Below are positions 653 through 62,243 of a DNA stretch of 64,000 bases, piece by piece. Numbering within the stretch: the stretch's first letter is position 1; every line of letters begins with the position of its first letter. The position numbers and the translations under genes are program-made. The stretch lies in IMG/VR virus record IMGVR_UViG_3300049215_000771, positions 62,001 to 126,000 of that record; one strand, written 5' to 3'. A model generated the notes under the pieces. That model worked only from the letters and a program-made list of their open reading frames with translations, ran no database searches and had not been told where the DNA came from.

Positions 653-681
653 TTTACAACCAGTGTATTTCGAGATAGAAT
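653..681 (+). promoter_or_regulatory. sigma70-type promoter
   Basis: TTTACA-17-TAGAAT. Confidence 0.7.
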
Positions 682-714: not shown

Positions 715-987
715 ATGACCACCAAAGTCACCCAAGCGGAATGCGAAGAGGCCAGGCCCGTTTGTGATCTGGTCTACACTGTCATCAAGGATCACCCGGA
801 AGGGATCAATTATCCCGACCTGATCCGTGAAATCAGGCTGCGGGGATGCACGATTTCTGATCTTTCGGAGCGTGTGCATTTTTCGCTGCACTGTATGGTT
901 TGTCACGGGGTTTGCGATAGGCTGGAAGCGCCGACCCTGGAGCGTATCTACCAACTTCCGGCACTGGAGAAGAAGTCCAATGAGTAA
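715..987 (+). CDS. hypothetical protein, possible winged-helix
   Basis: 90-aa ORF after the promoter; LVYTVIKDHPEGINYPDLIREI resembles a wHTH start. Confidence 0.55.
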   Translation: MTTKVTQAECEEARPVCDLVYTVIKDHPEGINYPDLIREIRLRGCTISDLSERVHFSLHCMVCHGVCDRLEAPTLERIYQLPALEKKSNE

Positions 988-1778
988 GCGCAAGAATCAG
1001 TGGTTCGAGGAACGCAAGGTCCAGCAGCCGGCGACTGTTTGTCTTTGAGGCAGCCAACACCCTTCTCGTCGAACTTCAGTTCGGCGAAGGCGGCACGGAC
1101 TCAAAGCTGTTCGTTGCTGACCTTCTACTCACCTACCAACGCTACGCCGCCATCAAAGGCTTCAAGACAGAACTCCTCTCCGAAGAAAATGGCAAAGCCA
1201 TGCTCAAGGTGATGGGGAAGAATGTCTGGACGGCCTTCAAGAATGAACCCGGCAAGCACGTTGTTCAGCGTGTGCCTCCGACCGAGCGTTCGGGGCGGTG
1301 GCAAACATCTGTGATTTCCGTCGCCGTCCTGCCGCTGCCCCCGGAAAACAAGCTGGTTCCACTCCAAGAAAAAGACTTGGAAATTACCACGCAAACCGGC
1401 AAGCAGAAGGCGGGCGGACAAAACGTCAACAAAGTCGCCAGCGCCGTCAGGATGAAGCATAAGCCTACGGGTCTGTCTGTATTCATCAACGGGCGGGACC
1501 AAGGCCAGAACAAGAAGGAAGCCCTGCATGTTCTGACGGCCAGGGTCAACCAGCTTCGTCTCGACAAGACCGCCTCCGATTACGACAATCTGAGGACGGG
1601 ACAGATGAAGGGAATCGGCGACAAACTCGGTGGTAGGGGCGACAAGATTCGTACCTACAACTTCATCAAGTCGAGGGTGGTGGATCACAGACTCGGCGTG
1701 AAGACCGGAAACATCAAGGAAGTGATGAAGGGAAACCTCACACTCCTGTTCGACAGTCAAGAAAAAGATGAAGAATAA
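980..1778 (+). CDS. prfA: class I peptide chain release factor, RF1-like, lacking domain 1; predicted +1 frameshift at 1043-1049 (about 265 aa)
   Basis: GGQ motif (AGGQNVNK), VQRVPPTE (PxT) and RTYNF..RVVDHR. RF homology (LVELQFGEGGTDSKLF) continues upstream of ATG 1200 to 1047 with no in-frame ATG/GTG/TTG. ATG 980 (GGAG upstream) opens a 22-codon frame ending CTT TGA. Confidence 0.85.
1043..1049 (+). other. candidate programmed +1 ribosomal frameshift site CUU-UGA
   Basis: CTT(1043-1045) TGA(1046-1048); the +1 codon GAG at 1047 is in the RF frame. Same core as the prfB shift site, but no Shine-Dalgarno 3 nt upstream. Confidence 0.6.
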
Positions 1779-1833: not shown

Positions 1834-2610
1834 TCAATTAGCCTTGAATCGGACATATTTGTGGGCTGTCCAGAAGTCGGAAGCGAGTTCCGGGTTCTCG
1901 ATGTAAGCGTAAGGCATTTCAAAGTAACCACTCATGCCCCAGCTTGCGCCCCAGGAATTGCGGACCTTGACCATCTTCGTGGCGTCGTTATAGCCAACTG
2001 CACATACAGCGTGACCACCAACAACCTGCTCGCCAGGCTTCGGCATCGGCATGATGCCAGTGTTGGCAACAGCGTCAGACTCGAAACTTTCGTATACGAC
2101 GAAACCGAAAATGAAAGGGTAGCCCTGCGCCAAGCACTGCTTCATGGCGGTCAAATTGCCATCGCCAATCTGCAAGCCCTTGTCAATGCTGTGCCAGTAA
2201 CCATCAGACCAAACAGGCTTAGATGGTTTTTCGGCGAACTTGTTGCCCTGGTCGGTGTACGGCCACAGGCTTTCGTGAGGAACGCCAAATCGAACAAGGG
2301 TGTTCATGGCATGAGCCAGGGTAGAACCATCATCCGATTGGGTGGTTCCATCCTGAAGGCGGTTCCACCAGTAGATTGCCAAACGAGATGGTACAAACTC
2401 GCCCAGCTTCAATTTCATCATGAGGAATTCAGCGAAACCAGCGGCAGAGTTGCCGGTGCAGGAACCAAGCTGCCCCTGGTCGTAGACAGCCGGACATTGC
2501 GGCGTCAGGTCAACTTCTGCGGGAAGGTTTGCTGCCTCGATTTCGGGCAGGAACTTGTGAGGGTGGTCAATGACCGGACCCTTCTTCCAACCATATGCGT
2601 ATTTTCCCAT
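1834..2610 (-). CDS. papain-family (C1A) cysteine peptidase
   Basis: QGQLGSCTGN, GGHAVCAVGY and VRNSWG catalytic motifs. Confidence 0.9.
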   Translation of the reverse strand: MGKYAYGWKKGPVIDHPHKFLPEIEAANLPAEVDLTPQCPAVYDQGQLGSCTGNSAAGFAEFLMMKLKLGEFVPSRLAIYWWNRLQDGTTQSDDGSTLAHAMNTLVRFGVPHESLWPYTDQGNKFAEKPSKPVWSDGYWHSIDKGLQIGDGNLTAMKQCLAQGYPFIFGFVVYESFESDAVANTGIMPMPKPGEQVVGGHAVCAVGYNDATKMVKVRNSWGASWGMSGYFEMPYAYIENPELASDFWTAHKYVRFKAN

Positions 2611-2674: not shown

Positions 2675-3238
2675 ATGTACAATGACCATATGCAGCACGA
2701 CAAACTCACGAATCTGGTGAAAGAATTCGCCTTGTCATTTGGCGATTTCACCCTCTCTAGTGGCGCAAAATCCCCATATTTTGTGGATATGAGCAAGGTC
2801 ACAAACCACGGTGAAGGTTTGGATGTCATCACCCTGGAATTTTCCCGAATGATAGGAGATGCCGATGCCATTGGCGGTCCAGTTTTGGGCGCAGCCCCTC
2901 TTGTAGCTGGAACTATCTTGGCTCATCGCCGGGATCATTTCGGTATGGCGAAGCCATTGCGAGGTTTCCTGGTTCGTAAAGAGCCGAAAGATGGGGAATA
3001 TATTGAAGGTTTCCTGAAGAAAGGCGACAAAGTGGTAGTCGTTGAGGATGTTGTTACCACGGGGACGCAAACCTTCAATGCCATCAAGCACGTTGAGGCC
3101 GCAGGAGGCCGAGTTGTGGGTGTTCTGGCGGTTCTGGATCGTCTCGCCGGGGCCAAGGGGAAGCTGGCCGATTACCACTTCCGGGCGCTGCTCACGATAG
3201 AAGATTTGGGAATTTCTGCGAACCTAACGGCCCCTTGA
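2675..3238 (+). CDS. pyrE: orotate phosphoribosyltransferase
   Basis: GDFTLSSGAKSPYFVD, LVRKEPK and VVVVEDVVTTG PRPP-binding loop. Confidence 0.88.
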   Translation: MYNDHMQHDKLTNLVKEFALSFGDFTLSSGAKSPYFVDMSKVTNHGEGLDVITLEFSRMIGDADAIGGPVLGAAPLVAGTILAHRRDHFGMAKPLRGFLVRKEPKDGEYIEGFLKKGDKVVVVEDVVTTGTQTFNAIKHVEAAGGRVVGVLAVLDRLAGAKGKLADYHFRALLTIEDLGISANLTAP

Positions 3239-3258: not shown

Positions 3259-3735
3259 ATGCACGTTGGCGATTTTTTCCGGGGTGTGGCCCGGTTTATT
3301 GACGAGAAGTTTGTACACTACGCTGGCAGGCCGCTGGTACACTACAGGCTCCTGCCGGTCAGTGTCAAACATGATGCGGACGGGTTGTATTACCCTGAGT
3401 CCACCGAGAAGAAGTGGGAAAACAAACCTACCTTTCTGCGAGGTTTTTACGAGATTCCTGTCTCGACAGCGACCGGCCAGTTTGGTATTGATGCACCAGA
3501 CGAAATGCTTGTTGAGTTGGGATTTAACGACACTGTGAAGGCGCTCGGCAAAGTTCCTGGCATCGGCGATCTCTTCCTGGATTGCAACCATGACAAGTGG
3601 ATTGTCGTCCAAAGAAGCAGAAAAGATGACATGGTGCGAGGCCAAAACCGCCTGATTTTGACAGTTTGTCGGTTCCAGGAGTCTGTGACTACGGGAGGCA
3701 AGCAAGATGTCGAACATCATCAAGGAACTGTATGA
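3259..3735 (+). CDS. hypothetical protein, resembles T4 gp14-like neck/head-completion proteins
   Basis: ATG 3259 after GGAGG; LYYPE...QFGID..DE...GKVPGIGDLF pattern recalled from neck proteins. Confidence 0.4.
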   Translation: MHVGDFFRGVARFIDEKFVHYAGRPLVHYRLLPVSVKHDADGLYYPESTEKKWENKPTFLRGFYEIPVSTATGQFGIDAPDEMLVELGFNDTVKALGKVPGIGDLFLDCNHDKWIVVQRSRKDDMVRGQNRLILTVCRFQESVTTGGKQDVEHHQGTV

Positions 3736-4846
3736 CAAGGGACTGGCAAGCTGTGGCGGACATCACTGGATGCCCGACAACATGCACTACATCACGATGA
3801 TGGGTTCGGTCGCCTACGGCGTCAGCAACGACACATCCGACACCGACATTTACTCCTTCTGCATCCCGCCGAAGGACAACTTGTTCCCGCACCTTCGGGG
3901 CGAGATCGTCGGGTTCGGCGATGCCAAGCACGCCAACAACAGGTTCCGCAACCATCAGCAGCATCACGTCAAGGATGTTGGCGCTGAGAAGGAGTACGAT
4001 CTCAACGTCTACAACATCGTTGACTACTTCCAGTTGGTGATGGAAAACAACCCGAACATGATCGACAGTTTGTTCACTCCGCAGTTCTGTGTTCTGCACA
4101 GTACCCGGATCGGCCAGATGGTTCGTGAGGCTCGGAAAACTTTCCTTCACCGTGGCGCATGGCACGCCTTCAAGGGCTACAGCTATGCTCAACTGAAAAA
4201 GATGAGGCCGGGCGAGGAATTGGTCTGCCCGGAGTGTGAGCAGATCAGCAAGGGGTGGCATTCCAAGGACAACAAGTTCGAGGTTGCCTACGCCTTGATG
4301 CTCGACTTGTGGGCAGCCCTGGAGCGTGACCAGGGAACTTTGACGGACGAGGAACTGGACAAGTATTGCTTTTACTGTGCCAAGTCCAGGAAGGTTTCCA
4401 AGCTGGAGAAGCAGAAGGTCAACCGGCGTGTCGGGAAGCGAAAGGAATCTGTCGAGAAGTACGGATTCGACCCGAAATTCGCCTACCACGTTGTTCGGCT
4501 CCTGGGTGAAATCGAACAGATTCTCACCGAGGGTGACATCGACCTGCAACGGAACCGTGAGCAACTGAAGTCCATCCGGCGTGGCGAATGGACTCTCGAA
4601 CAAATCGAGAGTTACTTCGCCGACAAGGAACCCCAGCTTGAAACTCTCTACAACGAGAACAAGGCTGGGTTGCCGTGGGGTCCGAAGGACGGGGACTTGC
4701 AGAAGAACGTCAAGCAGCTTCTTTTCCATTGCCTGGAAGAACACTACGGTTCGCTTGACAAGTGTGTGGTCAATGTCGATGCCGCCGCAAACGCCCTTCG
4801 GGAGATCGAGGGAATCGTCGCTCGTTACAGAAAGGCGCTTGCATGA
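3707..4846 (+). CDS. Pol-beta superfamily nucleotidyltransferase (RlaP/PF10127-like)
   Basis: GSVAYGVSNDTSDTDI, NNPNMIDSLF, KFAYHVVRLL. Confidence 0.8.
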   Translation: MSNIIKELYDKGLASCGGHHWMPDNMHYITMMGSVAYGVSNDTSDTDIYSFCIPPKDNLFPHLRGEIVGFGDAKHANNRFRNHQQHHVKDVGAEKEYDLNVYNIVDYFQLVMENNPNMIDSLFTPQFCVLHSTRIGQMVREARKTFLHRGAWHAFKGYSYAQLKKMRPGEELVCPECEQISKGWHSKDNKFEVAYALMLDLWAALERDQGTLTDEELDKYCFYCAKSRKVSKLEKQKVNRRVGKRKESVEKYGFDPKFAYHVVRLLGEIEQILTEGDIDLQRNREQLKSIRRGEWTLEQIESYFADKEPQLETLYNENKAGLPWGPKDGDLQKNVKQLLFHCLEEHYGSLDKCVVNVDAAANALREIEGIVARYRKALA

Positions 4847-18836: not shown

Positions 18837-18930
18837 GGAAGCGAATGCCGTCTGGTGTAGGCCGCAGTCTTCAAAACTGTTGTAGGGTGTGAACAACACT
18901 CTAGGAGGGTTCGATTCCCTTTCGCTTCCG
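18837..18930 (+). tRNA. selC: tRNA-Sec-like, anticodon UCA
   Basis: 8-bp acceptor GGAAGCGA/TCGCTTCC, 5-bp T stem with TTCGATT loop, TGGT D-loop, loop CTTCAAA (TCA at 18871-18873), 8-bp variable arm, G73; no encoded CCA. Confidence 0.85.
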
Positions 18931-59392: not shown

Positions 59393-59463
59393 GCCCCGTT
59401 GGTACATTGGCTGTGCCGTGGCCTCTAAAGCCACAGAAGTCGGTTCGATTCCGGCACGGGGTA
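59393..59463 (+). tRNA. amber suppressor tRNA, anticodon CUA (copy 1)
   Basis: GCCCCGT/ACGGGGT acceptor, GTGGC-CTCTAAA-GCCAC (CTA at 59425-59427), GTCGG-TTCGATT-CCGGC, A73. Confidence 0.85.
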
Positions 59464-59466
59464 CAA

Positions 59467-59539
59467 GCCCTGGTAGCTCAGTGGTCAGAGCGGTTGACTC
59501 TAAATCAACGTGTCGTGGGTTCGATCCCCACCCAGGGCG
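59467..59539 (+). tRNA. amber suppressor tRNA, anticodon CUA (copy 2)
   Basis: GCCCTGG/CCAGGGC acceptor, GCTC/GAGC D stem, GTTGA-CTCTAAA-TCAAC (CTA at 59500-59502), GTGGG-TTCGATC-CCCAC, G73. Confidence 0.88.
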
Positions 59540-61582: not shown

Positions 61583-62243
61583 GTTCCTTGTCGCCCGCCC
61601 GATTCTGAAAGACCCCGTGTTCGGCGGCAAGGTGGTGTTCATTACCCGTTCGGACAAGAACGGGTCCGAGGGGTTCATTCTCAATGGCCCTCAGTGTGGT
61701 CGTGTTGGTTTCGGCGAAATGAAGGGTGAGGAAGTCCCCCAAGATCGGGAACAAATGACCAAGATGGTCAACGAGGGTAAGATTGACTCGGCCCCTCTCT
61801 ACAGTGGTGGGCCTTGTCAAAGTCCATCCATCGTGATGTTCCACGGCTACCCGGATTTCATCGAATCTGCCGACAAGGACGAATTCCAGATTGGTTCGAC
61901 CCTGTTGGATGAAGTGAGTGGGGACAAAACCATCATTCCGGGCGTCTACTACGGCGAACCGTCAACGATGGCTCAGATCATCATGGGCAAGCGGGTTGTT
62001 GAAGGAAAATTTCGGTTCTTCAATAACCAGGCTGCCTGGAGCGCCGGCCAACTCGAACGTGAGATTGAAGCGGGAGCGTGGGATGTAGTGGAAGCCGACA
62101 TTGAGGCTGTCTTCGACCCGGCCAAGGCCGACAAAATCTGGTCTGAAAAATACAACTATCAGGCCAAAGATTTCATCAAGGACATGCTTCAAAATGACGA
62201 CGACCTGCCCCCGTTCCGAATGCCGGAACCTTCTGACAATTGA
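61566..62243 (+). CDS. YqgE/AlgH (UPF0301) family protein
   Basis: GKFLVARP.LKDP.F, SEGFILN, LYSGGPC, AWSAGQLEREIEAGAW. Confidence 0.8.
   Translation: MSFQGKFLVARPILKDPVFGGKVVFITRSDKNGSEGFILNGPQCGRVGFGEMKGEEVPQDREQMTKMVNEGKIDSAPLYSGGPCQSPSIVMFHGYPDFIESADKDEFQIGSTLLDEVSGDKTIIPGVYYGEPSTMAQIIMGKRVVEGKFRFFNNQAAWSAGQLEREIEAGAWDVVEADIEAVFDPAKADKIWSEKYNYQAKDFIKDMLQNDDDLPPFRMPEPSDN

Follow-up and report, generated by a model that had tools for sequence, protein, structure and literature searches.

A two-gene unit encoding a shortened, RF1-like class-I peptide release factor lies near the start of the window, a 64,000-nucleotide stretch (positions 62,001 to 126,000) of the 532,729-bp IMG/VR contig of a huge phage, IMGVR_UViG_3300049215_000771. 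A promoter-like site and a strong terminator bracket an unknown ORF, a short leader, and the release factor (RF) gene as one unit, the features of which are as follows (coordinates are those of the window).

653 to 681, plus strand: candidate sigma-70-like promoter (TTTACA-17-TAGAAT; 10 of 12 matches in a consensus scan, a consensus match only), following a terminator-like hairpin at 430 to 458
715 to 987, plus strand: 90-aa ORF of unknown function, whose TAA (985 to 987) overlaps the leader start (ATGAGTAA)
966 to 969, plus strand: GGAG ribosome-binding site of the leader, 10 nt upstream of the ATG at 980
980 to 1048, plus strand: leader ORF (ORF0) of 22 codons (MSKRKNQWFEERKVQQPATVCL) plus TGA
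1040 to 1049, plus strand: putative +1 shift site TGT CTT TGA G (E-site UGU, P-site CUU, A-site UGA, then G)
1047 to 1778, plus strand: RF body in the +1 frame, 243 codons plus TAA, corresponding to domains 2, 3, and 4 of a class-I release factor
1083 to 1112, plus strand: helix-5 tip, GEGGTDSKLF
1275 to 1283, plus strand: PxT "tripeptide anticodon," present as PPT within QRVPPTE
1413 to 1421, plus strand: GGQ peptidyl-tRNA hydrolysis motif
1782 to 1821, found on both strands: strong bidirectional intrinsic terminator hairpin (17 pairs, followed by a T run)

The leader starts at ATG 980 to 982 (frame 2) and ends with CTT (1043 to 1045) and TGA (1046 to 1048). The RF frame (frame 0) is open from position 984, after a TGA at 981 to 983, to the TAA at 1776 to 1778, and yet its first ATG, GTG, or TTG is not found until position 1200. 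A +1 slip on CTT-T would place GAG (1047 to 1049) in the A site, and homology to RF1 begins at that very codon. The 90-aa ORF had no Pfam, NCBIfam, or PHROG hit and shows no similarity to RF domain 1, which argues against its being a split-off domain 1, although it is conserved upstream of the RF gene in two of the closest relatives, L141 (60% identity) and L140.

The 243-residue +1 product is a homologue of RF1 lacking domain 1. Its alignment to Thermotoga maritima RF1 pairs query residue 1 with chain residue 83, and the Pfam PCRF domain was matched only at profile positions 100 to 194, followed by the RF-1 domain. The NCBIfam scores were 212.6 bits on prfA (cut-off of 400; profile positions 105 to 338 only), 152.5 bits on prfB, and 46.6 bits on prfH (cut-off of 166.65), all below their cut-offs, and the search against PDB sequences matched RF1 with an E value of 2.5e-40. 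An AlphaFold (AF2) model (pLDDT 86.5) superposes on ribosome-bound RF1 with TM scores of 0.80 to 0.84 over about 239 columns. The protein carries PPT rather than the SPF tripeptide of RF2. GGQ is invariant in the family, whereas PPT is invariant in one alignment of close relatives (A1) and near-invariant in a second (A2; P78 at 90% or more), and PAT, PAS, and PDN also occur in the wider family. Downstream of PPT, RWQTS replaces RIHTS, such that the equivalent of His193 is Gln (Gln86); this position is Q or H in the family. Notably, Asp18 at the helix-5 tip replaces the universal Glu of RF1 and RF2 (E119 of Thermus thermophilus RF1). D18, S19, K20, L21, and F22 are invariant in A1 and A2, and GGxDSKLF is the predominant form among 110 homologous proteins, a few TAG-class sequences reading GGxDARSF, DSRLF, or DSKIF. 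The initial annotation regarded the GGT at this tip as an RF2-like trait; however, the Thr is a variable position in the family (T/E/D/Q/S), and the conserved feature is the Asp that follows it.

As a single CTTTGA hexamer is not remarkable by itself, we examined whether the site is conserved. The public protein set holds more than 120 close homologues (56 to 100% identity, 190 to 290 aa), many of them on contigs of 0.4 to 0.67 Mb. Their called N termini are either cut at an internal Met or extended in the RF frame with unconserved sequence ending in x-F-[E/D/S], which is the protein-level shadow of C-TTT-GA or C-TTT-AG; public gene calls for this family are thus systematically wrong at the 5' end. 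DNA was retrieved for 143 loci from viral, metagenome, and genome collections, and each locus was anchored on the RF homology by tblastn. Among 110 distinct complete genes, 97 carry CTT followed by a stop in the register from which a +1 slip enters the RF frame. Within 10 codons of the start of RF homology, 95 CTT-stop hexamers are in that register, against 2 and 1 in the other two, and CTTTGG never occurs there. In 77 of the 97 loci, the RF frame has no ATG, GTG, or TTG upstream of the site, and in 47 of them that frame is open for eight codons or fewer; in LR756511.1, a TAG lies three codons upstream. The base after the stop is C in 69% and G in 20% of loci, a termination context that may be poor, as in prfB. 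TGT precedes CTT in 45 of 77 loci, and the three positions before CTT are T, G, and T in 79%, 81%, and 64% of the 97 loci.

The four closest relatives, L140, L143, L141, and L142, whose RF bodies are 95%, 87%, 83%, and 77% identical to that of the window, all keep an ATG-initiated leader of 19 to 23 codons ending in CTT-TGA. These leaders are conserved in their own frame (MxKxxNQ...PATVCL), with an in-frame 3-nt indel in L140 and with substitutions falling at third positions of the leader frame, whereas the RF frame upstream of the site is unconserved and is closed by stops 3 to 8 codons upstream in L140 and in three further homologous loci (L002, L017, and L066). The CTG at 1035, a possible noncanonical start, is CCG in L140. 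Residues 1 to 51, upstream of the ATG at 1200 that public gene callers chose, are as conserved as the rest of the protein, include the most conserved helix-5 motif, and are 94% identical in L140. Two further loci, L006 and L037, encode proteins that are 98% identical, with 13 synonymous and 5 nonsynonymous codon differences, indicating purifying selection.

Interestingly, the family goes beyond the picture given in the initial annotation in several respects. First, the stop codon at the site next to the RF body is TGA in 48 loci, TAG in 48, and TAA in 1 and changes at least 15 times on the protein tree (shuffled labels give about 34); L006 carries TAA and L037 carries TAG. No decoding-motif residue separates the TGA and TAG classes, the top-ranking column being simply the first +1 codon, and neither does GC content (Mann-Whitney p = 0.25). 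A comparison with suppressor tRNAs near the RF gene gave only a few, mixed cases, the flanks being too short. Second, an SD-like element ends 0 to 4 nt upstream of CTT in about 35% of loci (36 of 97), against 3 to 10% at most control offsets, with a second rise at offsets 26 to 32 that probably marks the leaders' own ribosome-binding sites. Several loci read GGAGG-TAT-CTT-TAG, almost the Escherichia coli prfB cassette. The absence of an SD noted in the initial annotation therefore holds for the window (best anti-SD duplex of -2.1 kcal/mol) and its clade but not for the family as a whole.

Third, 31 to 32 of the 97 loci have two CTT-stop sites in tandem register, consisting of a short basic leader (MSKKNRRYL type, with the SD encoded by its Arg-Arg or Arg-Gly codons), a first shift site, 10 to 22 codons, and a second shift site; two such loci, L080 and L114, were checked by eye. 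Nearly all first sites of these two-site loci have an SD. The stop combinations (site 1/site 2) are TAG/TAG in 11 loci, TAG/TGA in 9, TAA/TAG in 4, TAA/TGA in 3, TGA/TGA in 3, and TGA/TAG in 1. The leader of the window (...NQ-WFE-ERK...) lines up with "W L | D/E" at the first site of such relatives, and we speculate that it may be a healed first site. Fourth, six loci instead have an in-frame TGA a few codons after the start, and about 11 start directly at an ATG two or three codons before the first strand; the leader is therefore not needed for function. Local ORF lengths gave no support for the in-frame-TGA relatives being code-4 phages. Finally, although the initial annotation treated the protein as a phage factor, the family is not only viral. 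Members also lie on contigs binned to Obscuribacterales/Melainabacteria (up to 1.1 Mb) and Pirellulaceae, where their neighbors are ordinary bacterial genes, such as an ECF sigma/anti-sigma pair, MsrAB, and HAD hydrolases. In phages, the gene often sits within tRNA arrays.

Based on this conservation, we consider a programmed +1 frameshift of the prfB type, as proposed in the initial annotation, to be very likely, although the slip itself is inferred from comparative data rather than directly observed. In the proposed sequence of events, ribosomes start at AUG 980, probably coupled to the upstream ORF, translate the basic leader, and arrive with peptidyl-tRNA-Leu on CUU and UGA in the A site. 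If termination at UGA-G is slow, tRNA-Leu(GAG) re-pairs on UUU, GAG 1047 is read, and the 265-residue product (leader plus RF body) is completed; if a release factor acts first, only the 22-residue peptide is released. UGA is a genuine stop here, as TGA ends 44 of 84 modelled genes and a self-trained codon model fits the window best with code 11, codes 15 and 4 adding only noncoding extensions. By the tripeptide rule, the PPT motif predicts that the product reads UAA and UAG. Hence, in this phage the site most likely reports host RF2 capacity, such that the factor would be an on-demand back-up terminator. Domain 1 is dispensable for peptide release but needed for RF3 interplay (PMC1586002), and the factor should therefore be independent of RF3. 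We regard this overall explanation as likely, but its regulatory part, which the initial annotation also raised (synthesis only when UGA termination is slow, through host-RF2 cross-regulation or altered specificity), remains a plausible hypothesis. The window lacks the SD that stimulates prfB shifting, the phage also carries a tRNA-Sec-like tRNA(UCA) and two tRNA(CUA) of unknown effect on the site, and the use of TAG or TAA at the same site by close relatives with no change in decoding motifs fits a factor of broadened specificity or a simple attenuator at least as well as an RF2 sensor.

An alternative that retains the same frameshift, and that we put forward only tentatively, is that the loop is truly autoregulatory because the short factor reads UGA as well as UAG and UAA, so that whichever stop sits in the shift site is a direct read-out of the factor's own activity. 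This would explain the free interchange of sensor codons, even between near-identical proteins, and the tandem sites combining TAG with TGA in 10 loci. The Asp at the helix-5 tip is a candidate cause, as the Glu that it replaces probably contacts U1 and orients the Thr of PxT, and many members additionally have Gln for His193. Omnipotent RF2 variants are known and are toxic (PMC7530605; PDB 8p16), which would explain the tight control by one or two shifts. However, PPT predicts RF1 specificity, TAA should then be as acceptable as TGA or TAG and yet is nearly absent next to the RF body, and weak-stop selection alone could explain the interchange. In its fullest and still more doubtful form, this reading would make the short factor a natural omnipotent bacterial-type class-I release factor, kept under one or two tandem autoregulatory shifts because it is dangerous, each able to use any stop codon as its sensor, which huge phages and some bacteria would deploy as an RF3-independent back-up when normal termination fails.

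Less likely, the frameshift is a fixed attenuator that sets a low, constant yield of a factor that is harmful in excess, with any stop read by a single host RF serving equally well. TGA and TAG are used equally and interchangeably, TAA, which is read by both host RFs, is avoided next to the RF body, tandem sites would multiply the attenuation, and overproduction of RFs is toxic in Bacillus subtilis (PMC12421855). Moreover, direct-ATG members exist, and direct-start, in-frame-TGA, and shift forms have interchanged about ten times in all on the tree. On the other hand, a weak RBS or start codon would attenuate more cheaply, the cassette keeps the features that make prfB shifting responsive to RF level (a stop in the A site, what may be a poor 3' context, and an internal SD in many members), and any stop-dependent shift is intrinsically sensitive to RF concentration. 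That there is no recoding at all (an assembly or sequencing indel, a pseudogene, or a start at CTG 1035 or ATG 1200), which a single window could not exclude by itself, is, even without read data, very improbable given the same break at the same codon in 97 independent loci from many samples, the conservation described above, RF bodies without internal stops, and a three-T run too short for transcriptional slippage.

The mechanistic model for this locus is the autoregulatory shift of prfB (CUU UGA C with an internal SD), which likewise has a short leader ORF, CUU in the P site and a stop in the A site, a +1 slip into the frame encoding the rest of a class-I release factor, and, as in about one-third of the family, an SD three nucleotides upstream; TAA is disfavored in both (PMC12421855). 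Here, however, the product is RF1-like, the leader is a free-standing basic peptide placed before domain 2 rather than the start of domain 1, the E-site codon is usually UGU rather than UAU, about one-third of loci have two sites, and TAG is as common as TGA, whereas it was never seen in 8,164 prfB motifs (PMC12421855). The closest conceptual precedent is the Mimivirus/Megavirus class-I RF gene (R726/mg280), whose synthesis requires a UGA readthrough plus a frameshift at UAG (Mimivirus) or UAA (Megavirus), in a motif that its authors called similar to the bacterial "CUU UGA C," and which was proposed to be autoregulatory (PMC3521657). Some phage relatives here likewise carry an in-frame UGA, but the giant-virus factor is a nonhomologous eRF1-type protein of eukaryotic viruses, whereas here the factor is bacterial-type RF1-like, the two events are both +1 shifts, and the family spans phages and bacteria. 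Large phages are known to carry RF1 and RF2 together with tRNAs, including suppressor tRNAs, as part of a translation module (Jade RF1 and Lak and Agate RF2 of recoded phages, and those of huge phages; bioRxiv 10.1101/2021.08.26.457843; PMC7162821), but those reports describe no frameshift and no missing domain 1, and the window shows no stop-codon reassignment. PrfH also lacks domain 1 and retains GGQ but has its own decoding residues and an obligatory upstream RtcB-like partner (PMC1586002), whereas the protein described here keeps the RF1 PxT region and has no RtcB neighbor, the upstream genes being the 90-aa ORF and an HNH endonuclease.

Programmed +1 frameshifting at CUU-stop has been treated as a signature of RF2, and a 2025 survey of more than 12,000 bacterial genomes found no convincing case in prfA (PMC12421855). 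The family described here, of which we found no prior report in the literature searched, appears to be a second, RF1-derived lineage using the same device, with UAG as often as UGA and often twice in series; likewise, we found no report in that literature of two obligatory tandem +1 shifts in a bacterial or phage gene. The cassette also offers compact stop-codon-responsive switches for synthetic biology. The interchange of stops represents a natural experiment on what the sensor codon must be, pointing either to cross-sensing of host RFs or to a factor with broadened stop specificity, and the locus suggests that huge phages carry an on-demand terminator within their translation module.

In 31-32 of the homologous loci (designated by L numbers), the relatives need two tandem +1 shifts, with a leader and a first CTT-stop site followed by 10-22 codons and a second CTT-stop site, as in L080 (2428-2492) and L114 (2416-2503); some of them mix TAG and TGA in one mRNA. 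Interestingly, the W-F-E of the leader in our window (1001-1009, TGG TTC GAG) lines up with “W L | D/E” (TGG CTT TGA) at the first shift site of two-site relatives such as L011, and it looks like a first site healed by a one-base loss. Other relatives (L010, L022, L061, L070, L083, and L092) have, in place of a shift site, an in-frame TGA 4-10 codons after the start in the RF frame, around locus position 2480-2520. As local ORF lengths give no sign of code 4 in these relatives, a readthrough requirement is possible. In L004 (LR756501.1, a 735-kb phage), the domain-1-less RF starts at a plain ATG, and yet an in-frame TGA (3097-3099) is located inside the RF body, which hints at TGA reassignment or another recoding event in that phage. 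Public gene calls of this family, including the protein records P0002, P0011, P0014, and P0015 and others, are wrong at the 5′ end, being either truncated at an internal Met or extended in the RF frame with unconserved Arg/Ser-rich sequence.

The window also encodes the following tRNAs and neighboring genes:
18837-18929 (+), a 93-nt tRNA with anticodon TCA
59393-59463 (+) and 59467-59539 (+), two adjacent tRNAs with anticodon CTA (amber suppressors)
1-425, an HNH endonuclease
1834-2610 (-), a papain-like C1 peptidase
2675-3238, a phosphoribosyltransferase
3707-4846, an RlaP-type nucleotidyltransferase

The tRNA with anticodon TCA matches Rfam tRNA-Sec at 76.5 bits (gathering score, 47) and is a selenocysteine-type tRNA in a huge-phage window. 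Despite the presence of the two amber suppressors, the genes in the window fit the standard code, and TAG ends only 7 of 84 modelled genes. The same order of the neighboring genes is seen in L140, and L141 has a HisRS fragment nearby. In L093, L098, and L111 (and also in L019, L022, L087, L088, L092, and L136), the RF gene is embedded in phage tRNA arrays; notably, tRNA-Leu(GAG), the tRNA that reads the slippery CUU, lies just upstream in three loci.

Family members with CTT-TAG or CTT-TGA sites were also observed on contigs of Obscuribacterales and Pirellulaceae MAGs (L119-L124, L126, L129, and L130; L115, L118, L125, L127, L128, L131, and L133-L135). As these members lie next to ordinary bacterial genes, cellular copies of the family exist.
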